From the sequence record NC_029103.1: a stretch of 64,000 nt of DNA. The stretch is one strand, 5' to 3'. Positions 38,295-58,263 of this stretch are shown here, one piece after another (positions within the stretch are counted from its first letter, which is position 1; every line of letters begins with the position of its first letter). The notes beneath the pieces were generated by a model. That model had not been told where the DNA came from and did not search any database. It saw only the letters and a program-made list of their open reading frames with translations. Position numbers and translations under genes: made by a program.

Positions 38295-38440
38295 ATTTGG
38301 TCAATCATATGTATGCCAACGAGAATATTTAAGTTTTCTGCATAACCCGTTAGGAGGAAAAGCGGGTTGAGGTGTGTGGTGAGGAGAGAGGAAATAAGAC
38401 CTCAAACAGTTGTTTGAGAGAAAGAGGGAATAAAAAAGAA

Positions 38441-38893
38441 CTAGCAAACTTCAGCAGTTGATCTAATTTTAATTATATACCTGCCAGAAGACAGTTTTTT
38501 AGAATATATTTCGTAATACACTGTACACCAACCAACGTATTCGTTATGATAATCCCTACCTTCAATTAACAACTTTAGTTCTTGTAATGCCTTATCCTTC
38601 AATGTCTTTGCTTTCTTCTTCTTTTTGTTTTCCCACATTACTTCTAATTCATAACCAAGATCGGGGTCTGGGTCATGTTCAAACGTATAGTGCATGTCAA
38701 GTTCTTCATAACTTTCAGCGATAAAACCACAAAGTTTGCAAAAATACAATTTGTTTTCTTCTTGAATTTTATTTTTCTTCTGAGTAGTGCTACTTCCCAT
38801 GGTTTTCGCCACTATAGTATTCGTTATGGGAATATATAAAATTTCTGCCAAACAAGTTAGGCAGTAAATGTTAGAACAAACGTGGTAAAACAA
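38441..38893 (-). CDS. C2H2 zinc-finger protein (true start probably about 38800)
   Basis: FCKLCGFIAESYEELDMHYTFEH. Confidence 0.65.
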   Translation of the reverse strand: MFYHVCSNIYCLTCLAEILYIPITNTIVAKTMGSSTTQKKNKIQEENKLYFCKLCGFIAESYEELDMHYTFEHDPDPDLGYELEVMWENKKKKKAKTLKDKALQELKLLIEGRDYHNEYVGWCTVYYEIYSKKLSSGRYIIKIRSTAEVC

Positions 38894-39004
38894 ACGACAA
38901 GTCTTATATCTCTCAGGACGCGGAGCAGGTCGAGGGCTGGGTACGGCGAGACAACTCTACAACAGCTGTTTGAGAGGGCAATAAAAATAAAAACGGGCTG
39001 GCTT

Positions 39005-39193
39005 TTAGCTTGTGAGCGAGTACAGTTTGTACAAATACATCTGGATTTTTTGCACAACAAAATATGCTTTCCCTAGCTTCTCCTTATCCAGATTACCTTT
39101 CGTCATAATCTCATTCATAAGCTCTTCCAACTCACTGAAATCGTCTTTTAACATTTCCGTGATTTTTTGTGCCAATATTTCATCCATATTCAT
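39005..39193 (-). CDS. Small helical protein under a CTAAC-type promoter
   Basis: 62-aa ORF; promoter at 39218-39246. Confidence 0.65.
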   Translation of the reverse strand: MNMDEILAQKITEMLKDDFSELEELMNEIMTKGNLDKEKLGKAYFVVQKIQMYLYKLYSLTS

Positions 39194-39338
39194 GGCACTT
39201 AATTACTGGTAAGTCTGGTATTTAAAATTTCTGCTCAACAAGTTAGACAGAATCGACGAGCTGTGTACACTGAAAACAACTCTAAAACAGCTGTTGTTTA
39301 AAATCGGATTAAAAGAGAAGGAGAAGGGAAAAAAAGAA

Positions 39339-39533
39339 TTATTGATTTTGCGGTTGTTGACTTTGGTTCTGCTTGGGTTTGAAAAAGATTATCTTGTTCT
39401 CTGGATCCAAGACTGGCTCATAATCGAGTAAAAAAACAGCAGATTTTCCTGGCACTGAAATGTAGTATATCGGATATACTTTACCGTTTTTCTTCGTTGT
39501 TTTAACCCTCCATCTTAACTTTACCTCGACCAT
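39339..39533 (-). CDS. Small basic protein, possible swapped-hairpin (AbrB-like) DNA binder
   Basis: KKNGKVYPIYYISVP pattern; GGTGAAAAT RBS. Confidence 0.5.
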   Translation of the reverse strand: MVEVKLRWRVKTTKKNGKVYPIYYISVPGKSAVFLLDYEPVLDPENKIIFFKPKQNQSQQPQNQ

Positions 39534-39587
39534 ATTTTCACCTATTATATAATATGAATTATATGCTTAAAAAGGTAGTCAAGATAG

Positions 39588-40316
39588 TTAGGTAGAAAGT
39601 TTACGCAAAATATCCAGGGCGTCTTTCGTTTGTGTGTACTGTATAATTCTTTCTAACTTCCTATGTCCGGTTATCTTCGCGATAAGTGCTGGGTCTGTAG
39701 CATTTTTTGCCAGGAAGGAAATCAGTGCATATCGCAACGAATGTGTGTTGCACTTCAGGTATTTCAGTGCGAACATCCTTATTCTTGCTTCCAGTTTATC
39801 GTCATTGATGGTCAGTACTGATTTGTAAGCTAGTCTGTTCCTGATGACATCGGGGATAATGAAGAACCTCGTGTTGCCGTGCTTTTCTGCTTGCAGTTGA
39901 AACTCTCTTTGCCCCGATTCCGCAAACGTCTTAAATGCCCTAATTGCCTCACCTATCCTAGCACCGTTTAACAGCTGTATGAGCAGAATGGCAACGTACG
40001 CCTCGTAGGGCATCAAGTTCAAATCAAACAGCTGTTTGTACGCAGACGTGAGGACTTTCTTGGCTTCGAGGAAATCTACGCTGTAGTCCCAAGTATGCTC
40101 TATCTTCTTCTTGCCGAGCGGTCTCAGAATTCTCTTGAGTACCTCACTTTCCTCTCTCTTTCCTTTCTTCTTCTCCTCCTTCAGTCCTAGTTTTACAGCT
40201 ATCATATCAACGATATCCTTCCATCCCTTTTCCTTAGCTTCTTTAAGGTACTCCAAAAGCTTAGGGGAGTTGTCGGGAAGGTTTAGAATAATTTGCTTAA
40301 GTTCGTCTTTGTCCAT
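39588..40316 (-). CDS. Tyrosine recombinase/integrase (Xer-like, not the SSV partitioning type)
   Basis: Catalytic residues NGAR, K, HSLR, TGH and QY are all present. Confidence 0.92.
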   Translation of the reverse strand: MDKDELKQIILNLPDNSPKLLEYLKEAKEKGWKDIVDMIAVKLGLKEEKKKGKREESEVLKRILRPLGKKKIEHTWDYSVDFLEAKKVLTSAYKQLFDLNLMPYEAYVAILLIQLLNGARIGEAIRAFKTFAESGQREFQLQAEKHGNTRFFIIPDVIRNRLAYKSVLTINDDKLEARIRMFALKYLKCNTHSLRYALISFLAKNATDPALIAKITGHRKLERIIQYTQTKDALDILRKLST

Positions 40317-40442
40317 TTATTTCACCCTGTTACTATCAAAAATTGAATTTTGTTTTTATCGGGTTGACTTAATTCTCCCTTATCTTCCATTTCGCTTTCC
40401 CTCATATTATCCTCTCAAACAGAAGTTTAAAAACCCCGAGGG

Positions 40443-40468
40443 ATTTCGCTTTGAGCCGAAAGCGAAAT
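40443..40468. other. Candidate tyrosine-recombinase core site (10-6-10 inverted repeat)
   Basis: ATTTCGCTTT-gagccg-AAAGCGAAAT; an extra half-site lies at 40389-40398. Confidence 0.5.
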
Positions 40469-40509
40469 GTTTTTAATACTACCTTCCTATTTTTTACATG
40501 GGGAAATAG

Positions 40510-41196
40510 ATGAAAATATTAAAGAGCGAATTGTTAGGAATTGAAGAAAATGATAATAAGTTAAAAATAACATTCAAAACCACTTCTAGCGAACCATTAG
40601 TATTTAGATTTAAGAATGAGATATTCGGAATTGCGGAAAATGTGGACATTTATGAAATTACTTTTGACGTGTTTCCAGTGATCATGCTTGATTATACTAT
40701 GAAAAATGCATTTACAGAAAGATTCAAAAGAATGACGACTGACAAATACATTATAAATGTAGACACAATCGGTGATTTTAACGACTTCGACGAATTCAAA
40801 AACTTCTTGGTTAGATATCCATCGTATGTACGTTTTTTAGAACTAGTATACCGCATTTTTAACATGAAACCATGGTTATTTCCTCTGTATATTTCAACAT
40901 TTTCGTACAAACATTATATAAATTTAAATCAGCATGAAAATCAGCATGAGCATGAAATAGAAATAACAATAGAAAAGATAAGTATCAGCAATATCTTCAA
41001 GAAGTTTCATGTTAACAATAAAATATCAATGAAATTGCTAGACAAAAATGGTTATTTGTTGTTATCAATCAATAATACACCTTTTATCGATTTAGGTCAT
41101 ACTATAATGTATAATGATCTTATTAAAATATTAGAAGAAAGACCGAAAGCGATAATAAATATATTAATAATGCTAATATTAACTCTTGCAGATTGA
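40510..41196 (+). CDS. Hypothetical AT-rich protein
   Basis: 228-aa ORF with GGGG RBS. Confidence 0.6.
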   Translation: MKILKSELLGIEENDNKLKITFKTTSSEPLVFRFKNEIFGIAENVDIYEITFDVFPVIMLDYTMKNAFTERFKRMTTDKYIINVDTIGDFNDFDEFKNFLVRYPSYVRFLELVYRIFNMKPWLFPLYISTFSYKHYINLNQHENQHEHEIEITIEKISISNIFKKFHVNNKISMKLLDKNGYLLLSINNTPFIDLGHTIMYNDLIKILEERPKAIINILIMLILTLAD

Positions 41197-41474
41197 CGTA
41201 TTTAATTATGAACTCCTCAAAAGTTTTTTCTCCCTGACCTATTTTCTCCCCTTAAACGAGCTGAATATTGTTACAGCTTGGTGGAGCTACATGTCAACTT
41301 CTTAAGGAGCTTTAACAGCTTTTTTAAGAATTTGTATTCCTTCCCGTCATTGCCCATCATACTTCTTATTGTGACGGTCAGTGGGAAAATAGTCATTTTC
41401 TTTTCTAACAGCTGTTCATTTATATGTTAGTTTGTTGATTATTTATTTAGAGTGAATTTGGAAAAGGTGGTAAT

Positions 41475-42125
41475 ATGACCCCACTCAATATAAACCTCAA
41501 TATAAATCCACTCACAGGGGTCGAAATAATAATAACGCTACTTTTAGCAATAGCCACATACGATGTATATACTAAAGTAAAAACAACAAAAACAAAACAT
41601 TTACACGAGATATTAAGTCTTGAAGCAATTGCAATAAAATCAACAATTATAGACATGTCACGGTTTGCTCTATTATGGGTAGCCATGATCTTATCATTAA
41701 TTAGTATAATATGGTCTACTAAGTTATCTATAGTGTTCGTAGCAGACTCGCTACAAAGTCCTTTATCTACTGGCATTGAAATCGCCCTTTTCCTGCTTTT
41801 ATTTGTTAATGTCACATTCATCCGTTATTTCTTTAACAAATACGGAGCCGTCTACAAATTGCCACTCGCATTTTTAGTGAGAAATAATATTAAACAGTTC
41901 CTAGCTAAACGTCCAGAAATGGTTATAACACTAATGGCTTTTCCTATAGCATACGCCATAACAATTATCTACCTTTTGACGCTACTCATAAATGCTCCAT
42001 CACTTTTATCAAAAGAGGTTGTAGGTATAGTCACTGTACTTCTGCTCATTGAGGTTCTACCTAACAAAAAATATGATAACGCTATTAATCTTGTAGAAAA
42101 AATTTGGAGTATAAGAATGAAGTGA
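41475..42125 (+). CDS. Multi-TM membrane protein, paralog family C (copy 1)
   Basis: YFFNKYGAVYKLP and NKKYDN motifs shared with 44944-45639. Confidence 0.7.
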   Translation: MTPLNINLNINPLTGVEIIITLLLAIATYDVYTKVKTTKTKHLHEILSLEAIAIKSTIIDMSRFALLWVAMILSLISIIWSTKLSIVFVADSLQSPLSTGIEIALFLLLFVNVTFIRYFFNKYGAVYKLPLAFLVRNNIKQFLAKRPEMVITLMAFPIAYAITIIYLLTLLINAPSLLSKEVVGIVTVLLLIEVLPNKKYDNAINLVEKIWSIRMK

Positions 42126-42296
42126 AATAATTTTTCTTTACTTTCTTTTTGGTCTCTATTTTCTGTGATACTCATATTATTTCTTTTCCCCTCCCCGTTT
42201 CTTTCTCCTCGGCTTCTTTCGTGTTGTCGATAATTTCAAACAGCTGTTTAAAAGCTTAAATATTCGCCTACCGAATGTTGTTGTAAGGGTCGAAAA

Positions 42297-42713
42297 ATGA
42301 TGGAAGAGTTAATGGAAAAAATTAAAGAATTCCTAGATGGAAAGAACGCAGAATATAATATAGGTCAGCCAGAAGAAACTGTAAATGACACGACATTAGT
42401 AGAAATTAAGTTGGGGAAACCTATAGAGTTAACAGAAAACGAATACGAAAAGTTAAGCGATCTTCTAAGGTTCTTAGGTTTTCGTCCTACTGACATATGG
42501 GAAAACCGGGTAAATGATTCCTTGAATTATAGAAGTTATAAAGGCGTTGACGAGTTCCTAGACAAGAACAACGACCAGGTGCGTATATATTATACTAAAG
42601 TTTCAACAGGTGACGAAACTACATATTTTGTTAATAAGATAGAGTTTGAGACTGAGGAAAATATACAGAAATATTTTAATGAGCTAAAGAAATATGTGAA
42701 CGAACTTTTCTAA
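42297..42713 (+). CDS. Small acidic alpha/beta protein (weak AcrID1-like pattern)
   Basis: Operator and TATA upstream; IELTENEYEKL pattern. Confidence 0.65.
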   Translation: MMEELMEKIKEFLDGKNAEYNIGQPEETVNDTTLVEIKLGKPIELTENEYEKLSDLLRFLGFRPTDIWENRVNDSLNYRSYKGVDEFLDKNNDQVRIYYTKVSTGDETTYFVNKIEFETEENIQKYFNELKKYVNELF

Positions 42714-42842
42714 TCTAAGCTAATTTTTCGTTTCTCTACACTGTCCTTAACCCCACCTGGGTCTGCTTCTTGCAGACTGACAGTACCCTCAAACATCTGT
42801 TTTATTTAAATACTAGCACCTATAATACTTTATTGAGGAAGG

Positions 42843-43535
42843 ATGGTTAAGGCTTGGTTTGACCAGTTAGATTTTGATGTGATAGAAGATATAGAATACA
42901 CTCGCGACGGAAAACCTGTAAAACCCTACGTGTCCTCATTTCATATTGTTACAAAGGTTCGATACGACGGTAAATACAAAGAATTAGATGTTATGGTCTT
43001 TCCGCAAAAGAATAAGATATTGATAGGATATCTGAAGGACGGTGAGTTTGAGGTCGTTGACGCAAAACTCTATGATTCAAGTGTTGGAATGGTGTTTGAT
43101 GACCTGCTTGACACACTTACCCCAATTACTAAAACAGTTCAAGAGAAAATACAGGAGGAAATTCAAGAGCTTAGTAACAATCCTGATAATGACGTATTGC
43201 CTAATATAACGCAGACCTTAAGGGTATACGGGACGATATTTAATGAAAATCCTTACGGTGAATATGTAGGTAATGTCACTATCAAACAGTATGTAGGCAC
43301 CAGCGTTGAGACGGAGCATAAAGTTGCTGAAGAATCGTTTGAGGTGAAAAAATCAAGTGATGGGGAACTAGAAGCAGTAGAATATGATCACGGGAAAGAG
43401 ATATTCAATCCAGTTTACCAGGAGATGTTAGACACCTTAATTCCCTCTAAAAGCGAGTTCGAAGATCTTATTGGACTTATAAAGCAGGCGATAAGGGAGG
43501 GTAAAGCTGAATATGATGATAAGAACCTAATTTAG
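42843..43535 (+). CDS. Acidic protein, paralog family B (copy 1)
   Basis: Shares KPY.S.F, YGTI, KKSSDGEL.AVE and Y..ML...IPSK.EFEDL with the next gene. Confidence 0.75.
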   Translation: MVKAWFDQLDFDVIEDIEYTRDGKPVKPYVSSFHIVTKVRYDGKYKELDVMVFPQKNKILIGYLKDGEFEVVDAKLYDSSVGMVFDDLLDTLTPITKTVQEKIQEEIQELSNNPDNDVLPNITQTLRVYGTIFNENPYGEYVGNVTIKQYVGTSVETEHKVAEESFEVKKSSDGELEAVEYDHGKEIFNPVYQEMLDTLIPSKSEFEDLIGLIKQAIREGKAEYDDKNLI

Positions 43536-43594
43536 CCTCTAAAACAGCTGTTTAAGTTAAATATTAGGACGAATAATATTTTTCCCGAGGGAAT

Positions 43595-44431
43595 ATGACA
43601 AAACACTGGCTGGAGATCTTCGATATAAAACCCTGGTTTGAGGCTTTCGACTTCCATATAAAAGTAAATATTAGGTATACAAACGAGGAAGGGCAGATCA
43701 AGCCATACTTGTCAGCATTTTCCGTTAGCCTTGACGCACTTTATCCTCACTTACAAACTATAACAATCGCGGTTTTTCCACAGAGCGATAAGTTAGAACT
43801 ACTATATGGAAATTCATACAATTACGTCATTGCTAAAGTACCTATCGAATATGCCGGACTGACATCCCATTTTATGCCGGTCGAAGAGACGCTCGACCAT
43901 ATAAATCTACCGGACTATGTGAAGGACTATTTGAAGAGAGTGTTGAAGCTAATACTGGACAAATTCTATGTCCGTGATGATCCGTTGAAGTTTCTTTCCG
44001 CTCTTAACCAGGGTGACACAAATGCTCTTGACGAACTGCATAAACTAATACAGACTATACATATTTATGGAACGATATATGACAAAGGGGACAATCGGAA
44101 AGACATAGGTAAGGTCAGTATTTACGATTATTTCGCTATCAATGGTAAAACAGAATACAACGATATTTACGATTATTTCGACAGCGTCGACTACGATGAA
44201 GCTGAACAATATGTCACTAAAAAATCATTTGTGATACAAAAATCAAGTGATGGGGAACTAACGGCAGTTGAAAAAGTCGGTGACAGAGAACTGTTCAATC
44301 CGACTTACCAGACAATGTTAAGTGTTATAATCCCCTCTAAGACGGAGTTTGAAGACCTTGTTCAATTCGTAAAGGATGTGATAAAGGAGAAAGGCGAAGC
44401 GGAATACGGTGATAAGAATGCAGTTCTCTAA
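43595..44431 (+). CDS. Acidic protein, paralog family B (copy 2)
   Basis: Tandem paralog; nucleotide identity in the 3' half. Confidence 0.75.
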   Translation: MTKHWLEIFDIKPWFEAFDFHIKVNIRYTNEEGQIKPYLSAFSVSLDALYPHLQTITIAVFPQSDKLELLYGNSYNYVIAKVPIEYAGLTSHFMPVEETLDHINLPDYVKDYLKRVLKLILDKFYVRDDPLKFLSALNQGDTNALDELHKLIQTIHIYGTIYDKGDNRKDIGKVSIYDYFAINGKTEYNDIYDYFDSVDYDEAEQYVTKKSFVIQKSSDGELTAVEKVGDRELFNPTYQTMLSVIIPSKTEFEDLVQFVKDVIKEKGEAEYGDKNAVL

Positions 44432-44511
44432 AAACAGATGTTTAAGTTAAAATTGGGTCGTTCACTGCTCCACGTCTTCTATTTAAAAACAAACTGGTAG
44501 AAGGTAATGAT

Positions 44512-44817
44512 ATGGGAATATTAGAAGAAGTCCAAAACGCACTATCCTACTACCAGAGGACTGCCGTCGATGAAAACGACACATTATACCTGCATAACAT
44601 ATATTCCCAACTATACTACATTCTATCAGTAGAGAATAGACCTCTGAATAGTGACGAATTCGACAATCTATTGAAAGCGTTAGGGATAAACGATACCACG
44701 ATGTTAGTCCAAGAGTACCAGAACCTATCCGAAGACCAGAAAAAGCAACTGTTGATGCAAATACTGGGAATGATAGAGAACGTTATGAGAAATATACACA
44801 CTATGACTAACTACTAA
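44512..44817 (+). CDS. Small acidic helical protein
   Basis: 101-aa ORF with GAAGGT RBS. Confidence 0.65.
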   Translation: MGILEEVQNALSYYQRTAVDENDTLYLHNIYSQLYYILSVENRPLNSDEFDNLLKALGINDTTMLVQEYQNLSEDQKKQLLMQILGMIENVMRNIHTMTNY

Positions 44818-44943
44818 TTCTCTCGAAACTCATTCTTTTAAAGCCAATATTATTTTTCATTATTTTTCATCTCTCATGTTAACTCTTGTTTCAGATCATG
44901 CGGGAAGTCGTAGTTTTTAAACAAACTAGGACAAGATGATAGT

Positions 44944-45639
44944 ATGAATCCGTTTAGTGTGAACCCACCTACAATTGAAATGACACTATTCCCATTAGGC
45001 AGTTTACTAGTTGTAGTCATAACTACGTTATTAATGTATATTCTATACATTACAATAAAAAAATGTGAATCTAAAATAACATGTCGTGAGAAATTAAGTC
45101 CTGGAATGATTGAGTTAAAATCGGTGATTGCTGTCATGCCACGCTTCTTTTTATTTTTTGTAGTAATGACTTCACCATTATCTATCTTAACTATGTCTAC
45201 TATGATGTCTATAGCATTCGTCATAGGTTCGCTACTAGGCAAGATACGGAGTACTCTACCTGCTGATGTTGAAATTCTGGTCTCTTTTCTGTTTTTTGTT
45301 GTTAATATTATACTTGTGCATTATTTCTTTAGCAAATACGGTTCTGCATATAAATTACCATTTGTAGTTTTCAGAAGAAATGACATCAAACAGTATTTTA
45401 AAAGGCACAAAGACCTTCGTATTAAACTCCTTTTTATATATATGGTATTAGCATCGGGTTCTGTAACATATGGCATAACAATTTTCAACCTTTTAACGAA
45501 TCTCGCAACTTCACGTTCAATTATATCAACAATTGATACAAGCATAGTTATTACACTACTACTCGTTTATGTCATATTTAACAAAAAATATGAGAATGTT
45601 TTCAAGCTTGCGAAAAAAATATTTGGAATAAAGGAGTGA
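44944..45639 (+). CDS. Multi-TM membrane protein, paralog family C (copy 2)
   Basis: YFFSKYGSAYKLP and NKKYEN motifs. Confidence 0.7.
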   Translation: MNPFSVNPPTIEMTLFPLGSLLVVVITTLLMYILYITIKKCESKITCREKLSPGMIELKSVIAVMPRFFLFFVVMTSPLSILTMSTMMSIAFVIGSLLGKIRSTLPADVEILVSFLFFVVNIILVHYFFSKYGSAYKLPFVVFRRNDIKQYFKRHKDLRIKLLFIYMVLASGSVTYGITIFNLLTNLATSRSIISTIDTSIVITLLLVYVIFNKKYENVFKLAKKIFGIKE

Positions 45640-45670
45640 ACTTCTTTAAATTGGAAGGAGGTCTAAGCCT

Positions 45671-46430
45671 ATGAGAGTTGAACTTGTATCATATACAAAA
45701 GACGGAGAAAAGATAATTGCGATAGCCTCAAAGATGAGTAGGTCTAGGAAGGGTTGGGACTATCACTGGCAAAATATGACCGATGAAGAAATAGAGGAAT
45801 GGATAAGGGATGCAATAGTTCACGGATATTGGTCTGTGCTTGAACACAGTGTATACACTTTCTCGCTTGAAGGTATTTCAAGAGTAGCGTCACACCAATT
45901 GGTCAGGCACCGTATCGCTTCGTATACTCAAATGAGTCATCGCTTTGCAAAAACCAGTCGATGAATATTATCAGCCTGTTATACCGCCTTCTACTAAGAA
46001 TCGGGCTAGGCAAACTGTAGAGGAAGCGTATAGAGAAGCATATAACCACTATTATAAACTCCTAGAAGCTGGTGTACCTGAAGAAGATGCCCGTTACGTT
46101 TTACCGAACGGTGTCAACACGAACATTGTTGTGACCATGAACGCACGAGAACTTTACAACTTCTTTGCCCTGCGTTTGTGTTCAAGGACACAGTGGGAGA
46201 TACGTCAGGTGGCGTGGAAGATGCTCGAAGAAGTGAAGAAAGTACATCCTAGACTATTCCGTTATGCTGGGGCTAACTGTATTATCCACGAGAACTTTAT
46301 ACGTGACACGCCGATAACCCTAGACGAACTTAACGAGAAGACGGAGTTTATATCGATGCGTTGTATAGAAGGAGTCCCGAAAGAAGGGATTTATAAATGT
46401 ATACAAAACGCAAGAACTCGTTCTAGTTAA
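45671..46430 (+). CDS. thyX: Flavin-dependent thymidylate synthase (split by an extra A at about 45950)
   Basis: HWSVLEH and [11 protein letters not shown] (RHRx7S) motifs, LPNG...[12 protein letters not shown], and RLC.RTQWEIR. Confidence 0.93.
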
Positions 46431-48811: not shown

Positions 48812-49051
48812 CTATTTCTTCTGACTTATATACTCTAGTACTTTCTTTAAATGTAAGTCTTGTTTCTCTCTATTGCTTATTTCCAAGGCTATTTTTATTG
48901 CCCTTAACAATGTGTCCCTTTGCTTTCTCAGTTTTTCGTTTTCTCTTTCGAGTCTTTCTATCTTTTTCTCTAAGACTGTTATGGTATCTAGTGCCTTTCT
49001 ATATTCAATTTCTAGTTCTGTATTTCTCTGAATGATGTCTTTTATTGTCAT
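48812..49051 (-). CDS. Coiled-coil/leucine-zipper protein (start MTIKD at 49051)
   Basis: Heptad pattern; CTAAC-type promoter at 49085-49111. Confidence 0.7.
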   Translation of the reverse strand: MTIKDIIQRNTELEIEYRKALDTITVLEKKIERLERENEKLRKQRDTLLRAIKIALEISNREKQDLHLKKVLEYISQKK

Positions 49052-49241
49052 GTTATTCCCTAGTCTATATGTTTTTAGTTGATATTTTAAGCTTTCTGTC
49101 AAACGAGTTAGGATGATACTGAGGGTAAGAAAGAGAAGTGGAAATAGACATTAGAAGAAGGAGAGAGAAATGGATTAGGTTAGGGGCTAAAAATAGAAAG
49201 GATAAAATAAAAAATAACGTAACTTGGTACCGTTATAACCG

Positions 49242-49418
49242 TTATAACCTTATTTTCTCTACTTTAGCAACAGGAACGTTCTCTTTTTCTAATTCTCTCC
49301 TTACAAAATCCTTGATTGCTACTCTGATAGCTTCTGACCTATACATGTTATTTCTTATTGCATATCTGTCTAATAGTTCCAATAGGTCTTCTTCTACCTT
49401 AAATGTTACGACTCTCAT
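49242..49418 (-). CDS. Ribbon-helix-helix (CopG-type) regulator, 58 aa, missing from the ORF track
   Basis: Translated by hand: [58 protein letters not shown]; GGGG RBS. Confidence 0.88.
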
Positions 49419-49547
49419 TTTTCCCCGGTTTAAGTATTACTCTTGGTTGGTATTTAAGCTTTCTGGCTAACGAGTTAGGACGAAAGGGCGAGACGGTTAG
49501 AATGACTCTGTATAACAGCTGTTTCATAAAAAATGGGGGTTCAAAGC

Positions 49548-49841: not shown

Positions 49842-49903
49842 CTTAATTTTGAAAACTTCTTCAGGTTCACCGTCACTTTTTCTTTTTTTAATAGTGAGCG
49901 ATT

Positions 49904-50682: not shown

Positions 50683-51366
50683 GTGGGTCGTTCAATCAAT
50701 ATATCTTCTTCGGAGGTTAATAAACCTTTTGCTCAAATAATTTATGATGTAAAGGGAGAAATTATAAGGACTTTTGGAATTTTGAGGAAAAAATTACTCG
50801 GAGTAAAGGACGTAATCGACCTTATAAACATACCGGCGTGGATAAAATCGCGTCTAAAGGACGAGAACGGTAGTGTAGAAGTATTAGAAGAAGGATACGG
50901 GAATAGAATACTCATAATTAAACTGGAGGATCCAGTGACCGATGACTGGACTAAGAAACAGAGAAAAACGGCTTTCGTTATCTATTTCTCATTTCAAACT
51001 TCAAAGCCCGTCGTACCTGCTCAACTACCATGGAAACTCAATCAGATCTACAAAATTGTCAATAAACTGCGAGCCAAAGGTTATCATGTTTTCCCTGGAA
51101 TCGTTGCTTTTTCATTCACTCAAGGAGCCAAAGAAATACTAAAGAAACATAAAGTAGAAGCATTTACAACGCTGGACTCGGTAAAACAATGGATATATAA
51201 CAAGATAATTTTCAGATTACAAAAATTAGTTGAAATAGCAAAATTCACATTTAAATTTGACAAGATATTTGTCTTTCTCAGGTCGATCATTCAGGAGCTG
51301 GGCTATGATATCCCAGACCAGCTCCTTGAAGTTTGGGCATTAAAGCCCAAGTTCCCGGAGCGTTGA
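50683..51366 (+). CDS. Basic hypothetical protein flanking the candidate origin
   Basis: 227-aa ORF. Confidence 0.65.
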   Translation: MGRSINISSSEVNKPFAQIIYDVKGEIIRTFGILRKKLLGVKDVIDLINIPAWIKSRLKDENGSVEVLEEGYGNRILIIKLEDPVTDDWTKKQRKTAFVIYFSFQTSKPVVPAQLPWKLNQIYKIVNKLRAKGYHVFPGIVAFSFTQGAKEILKKHKVEAFTTLDSVKQWIYNKIIFRLQKLVEIAKFTFKFDKIFVFLRSIIQELGYDIPDQLLEVWALKPKFPER

Positions 51367-51988
51367 AAAAGGCAGAGGGTCTGTCATCTAATTCTATCAA
51401 CTATTTTTCTCAGTCTTGTAATAAATATTCAGAGGACATTAAACTTCAAAATTAATTTCAAAATAATTCTTCTACCTTTTATAAAATTCTTTACAATTCA
51501 ATCTTGTAAAGTTGTGACTTATTACAAAATTTTCACATAGAACTACACTATTTTCATTTTATTTCTTTATATTAACAGAAACTCTGGAAAGACGTGAACA
51601 GAAATAAATTACAATTATTAAGGGAATGAACAGATATTTTTCCTAAAATAACGTGTTTTATAAAGAGAAATTTTTAGGATAAGGGCAAAAATTAACGACG
51701 TGAACAGAACCAGGGTGACTGTTGCACGTATATAGTATACTGTAAAAGTAACTATATCTAATAATCTAATCTAATATAAGGAACTACTAGGACGAGCTAC
51801 TGCAAAGTACGTAGTTTTTAGTAAAGGCAGTACACACTACAGCACACCACTGTACGCTACAGCACTCCAACCTGGCTTTAACACACCCTTACTTTTTGTT
51901 TATTATATTAAGGGGTTAATTTCGCCGAGTTGTTACTTTTTCACTAAGTCTCTTAGTCTAGTGATAAAAATTAGGATAAAGTTATAAA
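51367..51988. other. Long AT-rich non-coding region, candidate replication origin
   Basis: No ORF of 60 aa or more; GACGTGAACAGAA at 51591 and 51697 plus related AACAGA(A) copies; CTACAGCAC twice near 51840-51865. Confidence 0.4.
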
Positions 51989-52282
51989 TTGAGTTTTGCA
52001 TATATTCAAATTATGAAAAACATTTCGGGAAACAAGTATAATAATACTATTGCTCCTATGACAGAGGAAGAGTACGTAAAAGCGAGGGAATTCTATAAGT
52101 TTCTAGTAAGTATAACCAAGTGCAACAATGGGATCTTGACAATCGACAGGGAGAAGCTGATCGATATTGCATCTGCTTATATGGACTGTACTCCCATTGA
52201 GGCATACAACATACTGCTGAAGATGAAATCTTACGGCTGGGTAATTGCTTTAGATAAAGACTACATTGCAGTTAAGGTCTGA
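51989..52282 (+). CDS. Winged-helix-like DNA-binding protein
   Basis: REKLIDIASAYMDCTPIEAYNILLKMKSYGWV fits a wHTH followed by a wing. Confidence 0.6.
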   Translation: MSFAYIQIMKNISGNKYNNTIAPMTEEEYVKAREFYKFLVSITKCNNGILTIDREKLIDIASAYMDCTPIEAYNILLKMKSYGWVIALDKDYIAVKV

Positions 52283-52649
52283 CTTTCTTTTCGCGAGTGT
52301 TCTCCGCTCGGTTCTGTCTCAGCGGGCTGAGGTTGTCTGGCTATCCCTAAAACAGCTGTTTGTGGATTCATTTTCATGATCATCCCAGCTCACTCGCCAA
52401 ACTTGTATCGCCCTTTTTTGAATCATTAACTTTTTATCTGAATTTAACTTAGATTTAAACTGACCCATATATCACACCTCTTTTTTCTGATTTGTGACGA
52501 AGACGGAAAAACGGATTATGACGAGAGGAGTCCCAACATCCTCCTCTCCTTTTCCATATTTTCTTAATATTCGAGCTTCCCGTCGCGGTTCTGTCCAACT
52601 CGTTAGAGATTTAAATAACAGCATGGAGGAGTAGAAACTGGGGTTTAAG

Positions 52650-53240
52650 ATGATATTAGCAATAGGCTATAACCCAATAATCGAGAAACTTCAAGACATC
52701 ACTGGTTACATAATATACCCAAGGTTCTTCGACGACAAGAAGACATTACTCATAGACAGGAATTATAAGAGATACCTTAAGGAGCTTTGGTTTAACAAGA
52801 ACAGGATAGAAGTAGCGTTGTACCCTGACAATATTGACTACCTCCTTCCAGTCCCAAAGGACATAACTTACGTCGTTCCTATTCATACCCTGAGTCAGTT
52901 AGAAATTGCCGACAAGCTTACGGAAAATAACTATAAGGTGATAACTGGGTACGCCTCAGACCAGAAGTACAGGGACTATACCATTGACGACTTCATCAAG
53001 GCGTCTAAATACAAGAATTGGTACCTGGGCATTTCCACCAAACATGAGCTGAAAGAAGCCATGCTCTATTCATTCGATTACGGAGACATCACGTTAATGT
53101 TGCTCGGTAGATTCCAGCAGTTAAAGGACATTAACTACGTGAGGAGGAAGCTGAAAGAACTGTCACAACTGGTAAGCAGGCATGGAAAACAACTTACTCT
53201 GTTCGATTTTTCACAAAGCAACGGCACCTCGAACCTCTAG
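52650..53240 (+). CDS. Hypothetical protein, possible degenerate TGT-like barrel with C-terminal PIP-like motif
   Basis: LYPD, VVPIH, WYLG and DYGD motifs; QLTLFDF at the C-terminus. Confidence 0.6.
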   Translation: MILAIGYNPIIEKLQDITGYIIYPRFFDDKKTLLIDRNYKRYLKELWFNKNRIEVALYPDNIDYLLPVPKDITYVVPIHTLSQLEIADKLTENNYKVITGYASDQKYRDYTIDDFIKASKYKNWYLGISTKHELKEAMLYSFDYGDITLMLLGRFQQLKDINYVRRKLKELSQLVSRHGKQLTLFDFSQSNGTSNL

Positions 53241-53377
53241 CGGGTTTTTTATCATACTCTCTCCTAAACAGCTGTTTTAGAGTTTCTGCTCACCTGCTCG
53301 CCCGTCGCAGTTCTGCTAACCTGTTAGGCAGAAAATTTATATACCAGACTGCAAAGAGTATAAGTGGGGATAAAAAA

Positions 53378-53836
53378 ATGTCAACCCCACAAACACAAAC
53401 CCAACCTCAAACCCAAGCACAAATTCCAAGATACGAGAACTGTCTTCTTGTCACGAGGCATAAGCTCTTAGAACAACAGGAAGAAGACCTAATGAAAATT
53501 TGTAATAAGGTGTCAAGAGTGGAAATGCTCCCTGTAGATCTCAATGAACTAAAGAGAACGGTGGATTTCTATGATGCAGTGATTGGAATAGTTCCTTTAC
53601 CGCTCCAAGTACAAATATTACAAATGAAGAAACCGGTTTTGCTTTTCGAAATGATAGCAATAGGTACAGCAAAAACACATGAGGAAGCGGAAGAGATGTT
53701 AGCAAAGACAGGGAAGCAAGGGATAATCCTTCCCCCAGTACGTAGCGGAGAACCGTTCCGGGTATCAGTATATAAGGGAGTGATCTTGGTGAAAGAAATA
53801 AAAGTTGTTGATGAACCAATCATACAACACTGGTAA
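53378..53836 (+). CDS. Csx16/Crn4-like protein (candidate viral cyclic-oligoadenylate ring nuclease)
   Basis: LLVTRH ... DAVIGIVPLPLQVQI parallels Csx16 (FVTRH ... DTVIGTLPVHLAAEV). Confidence 0.5.
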   Translation: MSTPQTQTQPQTQAQIPRYENCLLVTRHKLLEQQEEDLMKICNKVSRVEMLPVDLNELKRTVDFYDAVIGIVPLPLQVQILQMKKPVLLFEMIAIGTAKTHEEAEEMLAKTGKQGIILPPVRSGEPFRVSVYKGVILVKEIKVVDEPIIQHW

Positions 53837-53845
53837 GTGATCAAG

Positions 53846-53989
53846 ATGAACTGCCTAGAATACTTGAGCGAAAAATATAACCTAAGGGGCTATAGTCCCG
53901 ATACATATCTAATTTTGATAGAAGCAACAAATTTGTCACCAGATGAGTGCGAAAGCTTATTTGCCTATGCAGAAGCCACATACGGTTAA
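53846..53989 (+). CDS. 47-aa protein missing from the ORF track
   Basis: MNCLEYLSEKYNLRGYSPDTYLILIEATNLSPDECESLFAYAEATYG, starting 9 bp after the previous stop, followed by a T-tract. Confidence 0.55.
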   Translation: MNCLEYLSEKYNLRGYSPDTYLILIEATNLSPDECESLFAYAEATYG

Positions 53990-54145
53990 AAGCCAGCCCG
54001 TTTTTTTATGCTCTGCTCTCTCAAACAGCTGTTTGAGAATTTTAGCTTGCCTGCCCGCTCCTGCCCGCTCGGATGTTTCTTCATAACCTGTTAGGCAGAA
54101 AATTTATATATCAAACCGACGAAGTATAAATGTGGTGGTAATATA

Positions 54146-54499
54146 ATGAGATGTTTTAAGGTTCAGGAGGTAATTTGCGTAGATGAAGAAGAAAAGATCA
54201 TGATAAACCTTACAAGGAGAAAATATAAAATTTTAAAGGACGAGGAATACTTCAAATTAATAGAGGAGTTAGAGAAGTACGGTAAAGAGTTAGAAGTTTT
54301 CGTCATAGCAGATCATCGGTACTTTCCAAGGACTTATTATGCTATTTATAGTATCAAGGTCGGTACANCNATATACTANTATTTTNTGGANNTTTANGAC
54401 GGTAGNAGTGCANNNTATTCNTATNNTTTNTGNAAGNNAAGNAANGAATGNGAGAGTANCATTAATGACTTAGAAGAAGANAACATAGCGATGNNNTAA
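54146..54499 (+). CDS. Acidic protein, paralog family D (copy 1)
   Basis: YFPRTYYAIY motif; CTAAC-type promoter. Confidence 0.65.
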   Translation: MRCFKVQEVICVDEEEKIMINLTRRKYKILKDEEYFKLIEELEKYGKELEVFVIADHRYFPRTYYAIYSIKVGTXIYXYFXXXXDGXSAXYXYXXXKXXXEXESXINDLEEXNIAMX

Positions 54500-54549
54500 T
54501 TNATTTTTTCTTTTTTGTTTTCTCTCTAAAACAGCTGTTTGAGGTATTT

Positions 54550-55017
54550 TTGTGTGTTATACGCTTTGATGTTGTTCAACTTCTAACGAAACTTGTTAGG
54601 TGTTACGGCTTAAATATTATTTACGACAAGAGAGTATANGAGGGCAAAATGACCAGATCAGTAGGGTTTTTATGTGATACGTCAGAAATTTTTTTAAACA
54701 TAGATGATGAAGTTGTTATCATTAAATTTAATAATAATAGAAAAATCATCGACATTGATATCGACNTAAAGAGTANATANAGNGATTATTCGAATGAATG
54801 TAGGGAAATTAAAGAAGTGGAGACGGATATAGAGGAATTATACTCAGCAAAATACTATCCTAGAACATATTATACAATTTATAGGGTTGTTGTACAACAA
54901 CCTAAAATAAAGCTATATTTAATGGAAAAGTTTAACGGAACCACAGGTTTAATCGTGTTCTTCTCTTGCAGAACTTTCAGAAACTGTATTAGAAAAATNG
55001 ATAANTTTGAAAAATAG
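54550..55017 (+). CDS. Paralog family D (copy 2)
   Basis: YYPRTYYTIY motif. Confidence 0.55.
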   Translation: MCVIRFDVVQLLTKLVRCYGLNIIYDKRVXEGKMTRSVGFLCDTSEIFLNIDDEVVIIKFNNNRKIIDIDIDXKSXXXDYSNECREIKEVETDIEELYSAKYYPRTYYTIYRVVVQQPKIKLYLMEKFNGTTGLIVFFSCRTFRNCIRKXDXFEK

Positions 55018-55191
55018 TCATTTTTCCTTCTTTGCGTATAGTACTTTCCCGTGGATTTTCAACACTCCGGTTCTGTCATACTCTGCTAACGCGTCTAGAT
55101 ACTCTTTATACGCGTCGACAATATAATCTACTCTCTTGTGCATCCTTTCCAAGATCTTTTTCTGTTCATCTGTTAACTTATGTTCAACCAT
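55018..55191 (-). CDS. Small protein of a type common on Sulfolobales mobile elements (start MVEHKL)
   Basis: LTDEQKKILERMHKRVDYI...RTGVLKIHG; family recognition from memory only. Confidence 0.6.
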   Translation of the reverse strand: MVEHKLTDEQKKILERMHKRVDYIVDAYKEYLDALAEYDRTGVLKIHGKVLYAKKEK

Positions 55192-55234
55192 TTGGGATTC
55201 ACTATTAACTATACTTCTGTCGAACAATTTATAA

Positions 55235-55786
55235 CTACATTTCGCTCCACATTCCCGTCGCCATNANGACNTATATTATGCTCATCACTTCTCCGAACNA
55301 CGATAAGAAATCGATAATTAANGAGAGGTCTNNGACAAACAGCTGTANTGGNGGAGCGATGAACGGTAGTGATATNCTGGACGTCATAGGTATCAGTATA
55401 GCGGTAAAATACACTAAAATGCTNTNGAAGCTNTTGAAGATGAACTGAAGTAGTAAGTAAATGAAGATTATTTGCATAGTACTCATTTGTTGTTGAGACA
55501 AGTTGAGCAGGTAATTTCTNGTGAANAACGCAGAAATAGTNGCAAGTCCTGCTATTACTCCTCCTGCTATTATGCCTGCACCTTGAAATATACTCCCTAG
55601 AATGTGTTCTAGAAATAGCACTAGATTGAACGACAGCAATGTTGAGATATAATTTGCAAGTGTGGGGTTCGTTGAATATTCGTTGAAATTAATCAAGGTC
55701 ACTAGCAAGTCGACTAGAAAAGTCGAATATATTATACCCTCATTTATCTTGTAGAAAACGGTCGCAAGTGAACCTATCAGTCCCAT
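55235..55786 (-). CDS. Multi-TM membrane protein
   Basis: Several hydrophobic helices; operator at 55814. Confidence 0.65.
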   Translation of the reverse strand: MGLIGSLATVFYKINEGIIYSTFLVDLLVTLINFNEYSTNPTLANYISTLLSFNLVLFLEHILGSIFQGAGIIAGGVIAGLXTISAXFXRNYLLNLSQQQMSTMQIIFIYLLLQFIFXSFXSILVYFTAILIPMTSXISLPFIAXPXQLFVXDLXLIIDFLSXFGEVMSIIXVXMATGMWSEM

Positions 55787-55866
55787 AAGGAGATTTTAGA
55801 CCCTGGAATTAAAAAACATATGTTTTAGCTCCAAGGGCTGGGGGGGGGGTAGGGAAGGCCCTTGCT

Positions 55867-56259
55867 ATGGAATGGAGAACCCAGTATTTAAATACCCTTT
55901 TTATCAAAAGTTCTCTTATGCTTACCCAAAAAGAAATGGTTTCGGCAATTTATAATTGTGTTAAGAAACGTGAAAAACATCTTATTGACGAAAAAGCTTT
56001 CTTAATTTCCCTCTCTGTAGGAATCCCTATAGACGATTTTTATGAGGTAGATGGACGTCTTACTTATCGCGGTTTATCAAGCGTTTATGATGTTGACTGC
56101 GGGAATTATTTGTCTATAATAGATAAATACGATGAGAAAACGATTTTAGGGGCTTCTCTGTACATGTTTAACCTAATAAGGAGAGGAGTACGCGGGAAGT
56201 TAAACGAGAAAGCCTCAAAATTACTCTCGGAACTTAATCTATTCCAGGGCTATTCTTAA
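55867..56259 (+). CDS. Hypothetical protein
   Basis: 130-aa ORF. Confidence 0.55.
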   Translation: MEWRTQYLNTLFIKSSLMLTQKEMVSAIYNCVKKREKHLIDEKAFLISLSVGIPIDDFYEVDGRLTYRGLSSVYDVDCGNYLSIIDKYDEKTILGASLYMFNLIRRGVRGKLNEKASKLLSELNLFQGYS

Positions 56260-56299
56260 TTTCTTTCATAACCTCTTCTTTATTCAACAGACCCTCAAG

Positions 56300-56785
56300 T
56301 TATTTTTTCAAATCAGCGTGGATCTTCGAAAAAAGATAATAACCTAAGGAGTCCTTTGAGGGCATAGGTGTCGTGTCGGCAACTAGTGCGTGTAATAATG
56401 CTCCGCTCAGCTCAGATATATAAGGGAATACTTCTTTTTTCTTTATATACACCAAGATAGGCATCCCCAAAAACACTACTAGGAAATTTGCGGTGTCGAA
56501 TATATCTTTAATCGTGGAATCCTCATTCGTGTTAGTCTTTTGCAGTTTCGAATATACTGTTGTTACGAAGCGTAAATACAACGAATAATAAGCGGTTATT
56601 AGGAAATTAGGGTTATCAGAATTTAATACCTCTTTGTAGAACTCCTCTTCATTTTTCTTCAACACGTCAATAAGTTTTTGTAACCTGTCCATTGTCATAT
56701 TAACATATTCTTCTATGGTCGCATTCTTCATTCCTTTTAGAACCTTATAATATTCCTCTAAAAGGAGAGGAATGTTAGCTAACAT
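56300..56785 (-). CDS. Hypothetical helical protein
   Basis: 161-aa ORF. Confidence 0.55.
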   Translation of the reverse strand: MLANIPLLLEEYYKVLKGMKNATIEEYVNMTMDRLQKLIDVLKKNEEEFYKEVLNSDNPNFLITAYYSLYLRFVTTVYSKLQKTNTNEDSTIKDIFDTANFLVVFLGMPILVYIKKKEVFPYISELSGALLHALVADTTPMPSKDSLGYYLFSKIHADLKK

Positions 56786-56905
56786 AGTTACAAATCTAAT
56801 ATCGCAATGTAGTATATTTAACTTTTGAGCAGTTCTTGATTTTTCAAGTATAAAGCCTTATCCGATTATAATCCTGTGATATCTTTATCACTTTTCTCTT
56901 TTAAA

Positions 56906-57270
56906 CTAAATAAATACCCTACATAATGAACAAATAAAGTGGCAAGATAGTCCTCATATGCCGGAATATAACCATGATATTCATGTAATATAATTTTTCC
57001 AATCACCCCTAAATATTCAGACATATATTCCTTATTATACACCCTGACTACTGGATATGTTCCCTTCTTGATATCGATTTCAATATATTTTACCTTTTTT
57101 ATACTATCTAGGTAAGGATTATCTACGATTATAGATTTGTTTTTTATCTTATCTAGATAAGGATAGTCTGTGATTATATATTTGTTATCCTCAGCTTCAG
57201 CTATGATGAACTTCGATTTCCAGTAACGTTTTATACTGAAATCTGTTGACCTTTATATGTATATCTTCAT
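56906..57270 (-). pseudogene. ORF interrupted by a TAA at codon 6 (pseudogene or base error)
   Basis: ATG overlaps the upstream stop; about 115 open codons follow the stop, with the internal repeat DYPYLDKIK/DNPYLDSIK. Confidence 0.5.
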
Positions 57271-57560
57271 CTACATCCTTTAGGTATATGTCGTCTACTC
57301 CTTAACTCCCCATAAAGGTCTGTATCTCTTCTAACTATTTCTAATGTCCTTTTTCTTAACTTACGACGTCTCAATTCTAACGTACCGTCTTTTTTCCATA
57401 TTATTTCTTCACTACATATATACCCCTCTTTATACCCCGCATATTCTTCCCCAATTTTTACGTTATGTCCGACATCTATGTACCCTCTACATGCCCTAAA
57501 CTTTCCTTCAAAAACCTTATTTTCTTCTAAAAATTTGCAAAGGAAATATGTTCTTTTCAT
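57267..57560 (-). CDS. Small basic protein
   Basis: 97-aa ORF. Confidence 0.55.
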   Translation of the reverse strand: MKRTYFLCKFLEENKVFEGKFRACRGYIDVGHNVKIGEEYAGYKEGYICSEEIIWKKDGTLELRRRKLRKRTLEIVRRDTDLYGELRSRRHIPKGCR

Positions 57561-57591
57561 TTTTGTTCCAACCTTGTTTCAGTTAAAATCT

Positions 57592-58078
57592 TTAAAACGT
57601 CATATGTACTGCTAGAAACAGCATTAATATCCCCAACAACGTTGCTAACCCATTAGCAAACGGGTTGTTATAGGAGAAATGTGCTAAAGCTATCCTCTTC
57701 CACCTTCCGTCGACCTTATGGTAAAATCCCCTTCTCAGTGAAGATGTCTAAGAGCATGTGAGAAAGCCCTGCTACAGCTCCGTCCATGAAAGTTATCAGG
57801 ATAAGCATGATAGGTGAATGAAATACGAAGTGTAAAGCGAGGGCAAACGGTACTGAACCCAGCAATCCCCAACCAATGCTCCTCGGTATTGTATGAGTTG
57901 TTGGAGTCCTCGAGATATATTCTCCCTTTATTTCATGTCCCAGAGTATCAATAACGTTGTTTATGAATATGGAGAGAACTCCAGCGTTTACTACGAGTAG
58001 AGGAGAGCCACTCAGGAGAATGAAGTTAAGCAGTGTTAACAAACCAAATGAAAATATATAATGTGTTCTTAACTGCAT
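57592..58078 (-). CDS. Membrane-bound metal-dependent hydrolase (YdjM/DUF1286-like), extra T near 57727
   Basis: TH, DTLGH, RTPTTH and SHMLLDIFT motifs; removing one T gives KGIYHKVDGRWKRIALAHFSYNNP. Confidence 0.75.
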
Positions 58079-58263
58079 CCTTTATCCCCACTTATTTCCT
58101 TATAATAATATATTTAAAAGTATGAACATGACTCCAACCAGTTAGGTATTTCTCTTGGTCAGTCTCAGACCAGTATGTTGGCTTTGCCAGTGAGTGCTTA
58201 GCAAATCACTCAAACATATGTTTTAAATATCTGTTTACCAACGATATACATAGGAGGATAGAA

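Follow-up and report, generated by a model that had tools for sequence, protein, structure and literature searches.

The stretch analysed here (the window) comprises 64,000 nt of sequence record NC_029103.1 (KP282677). The record is the genome of Sulfolobus monocaudavirus SMV3, a circular molecule of 64,323 bp; the virus is a member of the Bicaudaviridae with Sulfolobus as host. The window is 100% identical to the record, and a window coordinate equals the record coordinate minus 323. Seven near-identical strong archaeal promoters of this genome, each with a transcription factor B (TFB) recognition element (BRE) and a TATA box, are fused to a dyad-symmetric element and form a discrete set (Table 1). 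The main idea, that a motif marks early or anti-defence genes of SMV3, was already published as a prediction in 2024 (Bhoobalan-Chitty et al., 2024; PMC11065993), and the additions made here are incremental: the 26-bp dyad, its capsid-gene context, the SMV2 variant, the aCcr1-box before gp63, and a candidate binder, gp86.

A discrete class of composite promoters

The initial annotation had quoted six palindrome-promoter strings as the mark of a putative early/anti-defence regulon. All of the six are present, upstream of the named start codons and oriented with transcription, and a seventh, equally good site before gp47 had been overlooked. In the scan with a position weight matrix (PWM) that had been proposed as a check, a 29-nt PWM gives seven sites at 34–44 bits, with the next best at 8.2 bits. 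With a 35-nt PWM and leave-one-out scoring, the members reach 26–42 bits and the best non-member, a dyad upstream of gp03, reaches 17.5 bits. The description of a palindrome fused to a fixed promoter is supported. The bare palindrome CTAACNNGTTAG with up to one mismatch has 11 matches in the window against 2.7 expected (0 of 100 shuffles reach 11), and with up to two mismatches it is not enriched there (34 against 34.5 expected). The palindrome followed by CAGAAA (TAACNNGTTNNNCAGAAA) is found 18 times with up to two mismatches against 3.3 expected, again a count reached by 0 of 100 shuffles, and the strong core CAGAAA-NN-TTAWATA has zero occurrences in the window without the palindrome.

The upstream parts of the described promoter are also present, that is, a block rich in C (−20 to −11) and, 33–60 nt upstream, a copy of the other palindrome of the window, operator-1 (AACAGCTGTT). 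The “looser versions” listed at 52595, 854 and 58134 turned out to be three different things: the first is the gp68 promoter (+), the second a dyad without TATA box, and the third the inner 12-mer only. In the gp68 promoter, the TATA box is placed 3 nt past the inner palindrome, in place of the right outer arm, and orthologous copies with this arrangement occur in two contigs, at L005:769 and L019:7740.

Table 1. Promoter elements and genes of the SMV3 window, with one open reading frame of related genomes (window coordinates unless another record is named).
Feature	Position	Strand	Description
Dyad without TATA, gp03	847..872	+	TTTCTGCC-TAAC-TG-GTTG-GGCATAAC; ~100 nt upstream of gp03 ATG (957)
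Dyad without TATA, gp16	15849..15874	+	~100 nt upstream of gp16 ATG (15960); absent from the initial annotation
gp45	36979-37710	-	PHROG “virion structural protein” 2.2e-116; 37% identical to ATV ORF326a (tblastn)
gp46	37731-38294	-	PHROG “virion structural protein” 1.6e-96; 52% identical to ATV ORF187 (tblastn)
Composite promoter, gp46(-gp45)	38326..38360	-	TTTCCTCC-TAAC-GG-GTTA-TGCAGAAA, A, TATA CTTAAATA; PWM 39.2 bits, 36.6 bits left out
gp47	38441..38800	-	119 aa; single C2H2 zinc finger, lysine-rich tract; ADG.04 in PMC11065993
Composite promoter, gp47	38833..38867	-	TTACTGCC-TAAC-TT-GTTT-GGCAGAAA-T-TTTATATA; 40.3 bits left out
gp48	39005..39187	-	SSV1 D-63 family, helix-turn-helix hairpin; PF20940 2.5e-27; PDB 1SKV 6e-11
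Composite promoter, gp48	39219..39253	-	ATTCTGTC-TAAC-TT-GTTG-AGCAGAAA-T-TTTAAATA
gp62	48812..49051	-	79-aa coiled coil; weak coiled-coil Pfam matches only (ZapB etc.)
Composite promoter, gp62 (possibly also gp61)	49083..49118	-	TATA CTTAAAATA, one base longer; weakest member, 26.5 bits left out
gp63	49242..49418	-	58-aa ribbon-helix-helix, PF01402 4.7e-8; viral aCcr1 homologue
Exact aCcr1-box consensus AGTAATACT	49433..49441	-	Downstream of TATA in gp63 promoter; motif definition PMC9976878
Composite promoter, gp63	49451..49485	-	TTTCGTCC-TAAC-TC-GTTA-GCCAGAAA-G-CTTAAATA
Variant promoter, gp68	52587..52617	+	GTTCTGTC, CAAC-TC-GTTA, GAGA, TTTAAATA
Operator-1 copy AAACAGCTGTTT	53266..53277	+	45 nt from gp69 dyad
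Other operator-1 copies near dyads	38404-38415, 39285-39296, 49513-49524, 54023-54034		
Composite promoter, gp69-gp70	53309..53343	+	Perfect inner palindrome CTAACCTGTTAG; PWM 44.2 bits
gp69 + gp70	53378..53989	+	gp69 152 aa, virus-specific alpha/beta; gp70 47 aa
Composite promoter, gp71(-gp72)	54076..54110	+	42.2 bits left out
gp71 + gp72	54146..55017	+	gp71 117 aa, near-orphan; gp72 155 aa
Inner palindrome only, CTAACTGGTTGG	58134..58145	-	14 nt upstream of gp79 TATA box; without outer arms
gp86	63379..63705	+	Single-chain tandem ribbon-helix-helix; PF01402 3.8e-8, C-terminal half
Unannotated ribbon-helix-helix open reading frame	SMV1 NC_023585 (L023) 41790-41960; SMV1a (L026) about 38660-38830	-	

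Architecture of the dyad

Forty-four non-identical sites (7 from SMV3, 1 from SMV1, 4 from SMV4 and 32 from 15 IMG/VR contigs) were aligned with TAAC as the anchor. The consensus is a 26-bp imperfect dyad, TTTCnnYC-TAAC-NN-GTTR-KGCAGAAA, whose right outer arm doubles as the BRE (AGAAAN). TAAC and TT are invariant and the G preceding TT is present in 41 of the 44 sites, while the two central bases are free and position +5 carries 0.08 bits. To the right, the element runs on as R-K-G-C-A-G-A-A-A. In the left flank, T at −8 (39/44), T at −7 (35/44), C at −5 (39/44) and C at −1 (42/44) are conserved, and these four positions are complementary to +17, +16, +14 and +10, respectively, in 64–89% of the sites against 19–30% expected. 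The dyad symmetry is thus shown to reach into the BRE, with conserved arms around a free centre. The gp63 promoter fits the generic outer-plus-inner pattern TTTCNNNCNNNCNNGNNNGNNNGAAA on both strands.

In all seven SMV3 sites, AGAAAN is followed by an 8-bp TATA box, TTTAWATA, and the start codon lies 20–37 nt past this box in 39 of the 40 composite sites whose start can be called. This is the layout of an archaeal core promoter, namely, a purine-rich 6-nt BRE, an 8-bp A/T box, and a start some 20–40 nt further on. The copies hardly differ in the BRE, the TATA box and the CCAG/initiator region that follows, and the gp69 and gp71 promoters resemble a recent duplication.

The centre of the operator-1 copy is 33–60 nt from the dyad, and the distances cluster at about 34, 44, and 55 nt. 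The resultant length is 0.63 at a period of 10.5–11 bp, and p is about 0.03–0.05 when each distinct distance is counted once. With relatedness allowed for in this way, the spacing is no more than suggestive of a helical phasing of operator-1 relative to the dyad. Operator-1 itself (AAACAGCTGTTT) is widespread in the window: 61 copies with up to two mismatches are found against 4.4 expected, for example, at 5757, 22257, 32618, 42238, 43542, 48641, 50509, 52350, 53266, 54023 and 54529. Of the 12 perfect copies, 11 fall between genes as annotated, and the motif is often lengthened to CTCAAACAGCTGTTTGAG right after a T-run.

TATA-less dyads upstream of capsid-related genes

The same dyad is also found without a TATA box of its own upstream of gp03, a homologue of the major capsid protein, and upstream of gp16, annotated “major head protein” and homologous to SMV1 gp11. 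The actual BRE and TATA box of these genes (CGAAAAG-TTTWTTAA; CGAAAAGCTTATTAA in gp03) are about 40–45 nt downstream of the dyad, and a variant of operator-1, CAAACA[G/T]ATGTTT, is located between that TATA box and the ATG. This pair is conserved in SMV1 and SMV4, and single copies occur in seven further contigs. In a 16-base scan of IMG/VR, 62 loci were matched, of which only 13 have the extended element, the rest being chance matches in unrelated phages. All of the 13 loci precede gp03 or gp16 homologues, at varying distance from the TATA box.

The major capsid protein of SMV1 is gp03, and gp11 is abundant in the SMV1 virion. In the SMV1a time course, which is the only one for a relative, the early region is the structural module, and gp03 and gp11 are the two timing outliers within it, top-expressed and “full-time” (PMC12199143). 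The presence of the dyad before these two promoters suggests that the binding factor also acts on structural genes, and the dyad is therefore not specific to anti-defence genes. Indeed, SMV4 gp02, which is listed as ADG.73 in PMC11065993, is a homologue of the capsid protein.

The TATA-less pairs are at 656 and 15720 in SMV4 (L024) and at 779 and 16781 in SMV1 (L023). The two copies of one genome are more alike than either is to its orthologues: those of SMV4 are identical over ~35 nt, both of SMV1 are without the G of GTT, and both of SMV3 have ATATTCAAC. To judge from these alignments, the likeness points to gene conversion or to co-evolution with a genome-specific factor.

Occurrence in other viruses and in hosts

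Outside SMV3, the composite promoter occurs at four sites in SMV4, at one site in SMV1/SMV1a, and in about 15 hot-spring IMG/VR contigs carrying homologues of gp45–gp50. In aligned orthologous promoters, the flanks diverge around the conserved motif. The dyad was not found in the whole ATV genome (62.7 kb scanned). A scan of the GTDB species-representative genomes for the composite element gave no match in Sulfolobales and six bacterial matches, close to the chance expectation, and hence no evidence for the cassette in host promoters or proviruses.

In the published SMV2 promoters the outer arms are kept and the inner half-sites are altered (TTTCTACC-TTAC-NN-GTCA-GGCAGAAA; TTAC/TGAC-NN-GTCA/GTAA overall), and contig L099 is similar. 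The cassette is thus shown to be conserved across the clade of SMV1, SMV3, and SMV4, with SMV2 having a version with a different inner half-site.

The sole composite promoter of SMV1 belongs to an open reading frame (ORF) for an aCcr1-like ribbon-helix-helix (RHH) protein (VRVVTFKVDEELLEKLD...) that is unannotated in SMV1 and SMV1a, “gp40” being annotated on the opposite strand. Probably, per-gene expression tables in print miss this ORF.

Genes under the composite promoters

The downstream genes are mixed. gp46 and gp45 match ATV ORF187 and ORF326a, which are annotated as virion structural proteins; ATV virions contain a 22-kDa protein. The zinc finger of gp47 is visible as CxxC...HxxxxxH in the sequence, and its C2H2 matches in Pfam are weak and all under the gathering score. 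gp48 is a clear member of the D-63 family (PF20940, 95 bits against a gathering cut-off of 27). The D-63 fold is a dimeric four-helix bundle, a proposed adaptor and not a classical DNA-binding domain.

gp69 (53378-53836) has 32 homologues, all metagenomic, with the invariant residues C22, R27-H28, D37, C42, D145 and H151. Its AlphaFold2 model (pLDDT 89) is an alpha/beta fold; structure searches gave no PDB match at E ≤ 1e-3 and only unnamed viral proteins in BFVD, and the family may be an enzyme of unknown type. gp71 has only two homologues among 5.8 billion proteins, both metagenomic, and for gp71 and gp72 no Pfam family reached its cut-off and no PDB chain matched.

The gene list itself agrees with the earlier prediction. 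Virus-specific regulatory motifs were derived for SMV2, SMV3, SMV4, and others, and Supplementary Data 1 lists gp46, gp47, gp48 (“ADa”), gp62, gp69, and gp71 as anti-defence genes (ADGs) of SMV3 and gp63 and gp70 as low-probability ADGs, gp63 also being a putative regulator (PMC11065993). The list equals the genes of our seven promoters plus gp70, the second gene of the gp69 unit. The SMV3 set also has the form of such ADG sequences, a conserved virus-specific sequence with strong BRE and TATA box before several genes of one genome. Typical ADGs are transcribed right after infection and are small genes of low conservation that are dispensable, and some have a demonstrated anti-defence activity. 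The initial description as an anti-defence set stands as far as the genes are published candidates, and it does not stand as a purely anti-defence set, given the cell-cycle mimic gp63, the annotated-virion homologues gp46/gp45, and the capsid-gene dyads. The driven genes are a mixed “accessory and takeover” set, and the label “anti-defence regulon” is too narrow. The best candidates for anti-defence functions, as predicted, are the orphans gp69–gp72, and gp47, gp48 and gp62 are also among the best candidates now.

gp63 and the aCcr1-box

The purified gp63 protein of SMV3 was studied by Li et al. (2023): its target is the aCcr1-box AGTAATACN of the cdvA promoter, and over-expression of the protein causes division arrest with enlarged cells (PMC9976878). 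As an RHH protein of ~58 residues, a homologue of SiRe_0197 that arrests division (PMC9976878) and has the box in its own promoter, gp63 is a member of the aCcr1 family. GTAATAC of the gp63 promoter is found at the same place in SMV1 and in sequence L005, and not in SMV4. In the window the aCcr1-box has 24 matches, with 18.9 expected, and its core GTANTAC shows no enrichment; gp63 is therefore apparently without a viral regulon beyond its own promoter. The aCcr1-box is unrelated to TAAC-NN-GTTA. Because an exact box is present in its promoter, autoregulation by gp63, if any, would use a site separate from the dyad.

Candidate binders of the dyad

The binder of the dyad is probably encoded by this virus clade; it may instead be a host factor. 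The candidate singled out here is gp86. Its AlphaFold2 model (pLDDT 92) has the order beta-alpha-alpha, linker helix, beta-alpha-alpha, with strands at residues 3–11 and 58–66, that is, two RHH units in a single chain forming a pseudo-dimer. The best Foldseek matches are ~105–120-residue chains of the F-plasmid relaxosome, presumably TraY (probability 1.0, TM 0.55–0.66). gp86 has counterparts in SMV1 (gp50), SMV4 (gp67), and SMV2 (gp64) and none in ATV; alone among the predicted DNA-binding proteins examined, it follows the dyad-bearing clade. Furthermore, the sequences of its two beta-strands are (K/R)I(V/I)SFR and KQxSVKID where the dyads are of the TAAC type, and xVLSFR and K(T/R)xS(V/L)KVD in the homologues of SMV2 and L099, whose dyads are of the T(T/G)AC type. 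The promoter of gp86 itself has no dyad. As the dyad binder, gp86 is a tentative candidate of rather doubtful standing.

gp86 and gp87 (72 aa) form a pair (63379-63964, +) with 59–96% identity in SMV1–4 and about 37 metagenome proteins. They are adjacent in every neighbourhood checked, usually after a DnaA-like gene.

Other proteins were considered and set aside. SMV1 keeps three dyads but has none of gp47, gp48 and gp62, so that none of these is likely to be the common binder. The regulator put forward for SMV2, gp37 (PMC11065993), is of hydrophobic appearance and lacks homologues in SMV3, SMV1, and SMV4.

A proposed common off-switch and its alternatives

We give about an even chance to the reading that a single cis-regulatory cassette serves the seven units, consisting of a near-consensus core promoter and a dyad operator whose bound factor shuts the set off, with a shortened eighth version before gp68. 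In the unbound state, host TATA-binding protein (TBP) and TFB would use the cassette promoters strongly. A dimeric sequence-specific protein bound to the dyad would mask the BRE in competition with TFB, and its binding would switch the whole set off together, as a temporal shut-off or a feedback loop. We infer this repressor-style occlusion because the dyad includes the BRE. A fuller version, in which the dyad is the operator of a clade-specific regulator, perhaps gp86, is unlikely as a whole; it would combine BRE shut-off at about eight promoters, separate control of the two capsid-related promoters, and co-evolution of half-site and beta-strand in SMV2. If this were the case, a one-factor switch would explain why gp03 and gp11 of SMV1a depart in timing from the genes around them.

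Several points weigh against an off-switch of this kind. Archaeal activators, too, sit directly upstream of the BRE, so that activation would fit as well, and the TATA-less copies precede the most strongly and continuously expressed genes of SMV1a, which is no less compatible with activation than with repression. Conservation of the left outer arm is only partial, and a pyrimidine-rich context upstream could account for part of the outer symmetry. SMV1 retains a single composite promoter, and the “regulon” is thus not a stable unit across the clade. With regard to gp86, its link to the dyad is confounded by phylogeny, ~40 core genes having the same distribution, and the co-variation of strands and half-sites rests on two related lineages.

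The proposal of the initial annotation was an immediate-early anti-defence regulon in which the palindrome is the operator of the 58-aa RHH protein gp63, Aca-like and autoregulating the set. Consistent with this, gp63 is itself an RHH protein under the cassette, the RHH orthologues of SMV1, SMV4, and L005 are likewise under it, the only composite promoter of SMV1 being that of the RHH gene, and the protein is among the putative regulators of the published list. The studied target of gp63, however, is the aCcr1-box, unlike TAAC-NN-GTTA, with a separate exact box in its own promoter, and ATV has an RHH protein 61% identical to gp63 and yet no dyad. Moreover, the set includes homologues of annotated virion proteins, and the dyad marks capsid-gene upstream regions as well. 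Regulation of the set by the RHH protein at 49418 through the palindrome is thus not supported: gp63 is unlikely as the dyad binder, and the proposal taken as a whole is improbable. The dyad could otherwise be an upstream activating site, at which a dimeric activator recruits TFB and TBP and distal copies boost the capsid promoters, for very high or sustained expression. The inner palindrome stops 2 nt short of the BRE, a position used by the archaeal activators Ptr2 and TFB-RF1. The host Ara-box (AACATGTT), a palindromic upstream activating sequence, has a similar shape, the TATA-less dyads precede gp03 and gp11, and the 10.5–11 bp periodicity of the operator-1 spacing suggests co-operation on one face of the helix. 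On the other hand, a symmetric dimer on a dyad that runs through the BRE should occlude it, the near-consensus core promoters need no help, the distal dyads stand at variable distance from the TATA box, and the periodicity, counted per distinct distance, is only of the borderline p value given above. We consider an activating site unlikely.

There may also be no dedicated regulator at all, the strong promoter having been copied within the genome and the palindrome being an extended upstream promoter element or a by-product. The near-identity of BRE, TATA box, and CCAG/initiator region and the recently duplicated look of the gp69/gp71 promoters would agree with this, and the shared feature stressed in PMC11065993 is a strong promoter of a kind that highly expressed host genes have as well. 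Copying alone does not account for arms that stay invariant over 44 sites with a variable NN spacer and variable flanks, for a left arm that mirrors the right, for dyads without TATA box at two loci that are conserved among no fewer than 10 genomes or contigs, or for the symmetrical change of both inner half-sites in SMV2. This explanation is therefore quite improbable.

Comparison with known regulatory sequences

The closest relatives of the present element are the ADG regulatory sequences, which concern the same virus, promoters, and gene list and combine a strong BRE/TATA core with virus-specific flanks (PMC11065993). The main text and legends of that paper describe a dyad for SMV2 only, an inverted repeat overlapping the BRE that has the outer arms TTTCTNCC/GGCAGAAA in common with the SMV3 dyad; the SMV3 logo is in Supplementary Fig. 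3. The 26-bp symmetry in SMV3, SMV1, and SMV4, the TATA-less capsid-gene copies and the aCcr1-box of the gp63 promoter are not mentioned in that main text or its legends. In the aCcr1 circuit of Sulfolobales (PMC9976878), gp63 is a studied member, but the box is not the SMV3 palindrome and is not enriched in the window.

SvtR (SIRV1), AvtR (AFV6), and F55 (SSV1) are small RHH proteins acting on imperfect inverted or tandem repeats at or near the BRE and the transcription start site. As precedents, SvtR represses a structural-gene promoter from a site ~80 nt upstream of it, and the F55 sites overlap the BRE and the start site of early promoters (PMC5569661). The SvtR high-affinity site resembles the SMV3 distal dyads in its location, but the consensus sites of the three proteins (ATnnTTCAAnAnnnnnAAAATG, ATnnTnnTAnnACnTT, ATAGATAGAGT) are unrelated to the SMV3 dyad, for which RHH binding is only predicted. 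Aca-controlled anti-CRISPR promoters of bacteriophages and the rudivirus Aca8 system share with SMV3 a strong promoter (early, as predicted for SMV3), inverted repeats over core elements, and the idea of a small repressor. They differ in that the SMV3 set is without a demonstrated acr gene, gp63 has another target, and the candidate gp86 is encoded elsewhere, outside the motif.

The Ara-box, a XylR-dependent upstream activating sequence of Sulfolobales, has an 8-bp AAC-NN-GTT palindrome upstream of the BRE, whereas in the viral element the T...A on either side and the outer arms are required as well, and there is no link to pentose genes. Single-base changes in the Ara-box nearly abolish promoter activity (PMC7264815). 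In the viral sites the central dinucleotide is free and AT is present in only 1 of the 44, and the dyad was not taken as an Ara-box.

Next to nothing is known of how large spindle-shaped archaeal viruses regulate their genes, and motif prediction is the main current route to archaeal anti-defence genes. As the present motif also marks a cell-cycle regulator, homologues of annotated virion proteins, and capsid upstream regions, caution is needed before motif-bearing genes, such as SMV4 gp02, are called anti-defence genes, and gp86 is the specific binder candidate to follow.

Further features of the region

gp79, which follows the isolated inner palindrome, is a DUF1286 membrane protein. Upstream of gp73 (55018-55191, −), only a degenerate copy of the cassette is found, TAAATTGTTCGACAGAAG-TATAGTTAA at 55204-55232. 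gp73 is 83% identical to SMV1 gp44, an experimentally validated viral Phd-like antitoxin, ADG.17 in PMC11065993. At 39534-39610 (−), a perfect left dyad half, TTTCTACCTAAC, spans the last codons and the stop of the integrase gene gp50, just upstream of gp49. gp49 (64 aa) stands beside the integrase in SMV1–4, and the promoter of its SMV2 homologue gp40 has a shortened dyad with a TATA box directly after it.

Because of ambiguous bases (N) at about 55240-55300, 55348 and 20275, neither ORF calls nor motif scans are reliable near these places. Such bases are likewise present in the records of SMV4 and SMV2, some of them within the SMV4 RHH promoter. The thymidylate synthase gene (45671-46430, +) is annotated as two overlapping ORFs, gp58 and gp59, and this split may reflect a frameshift or an assembly error in a metagenome-derived genome.

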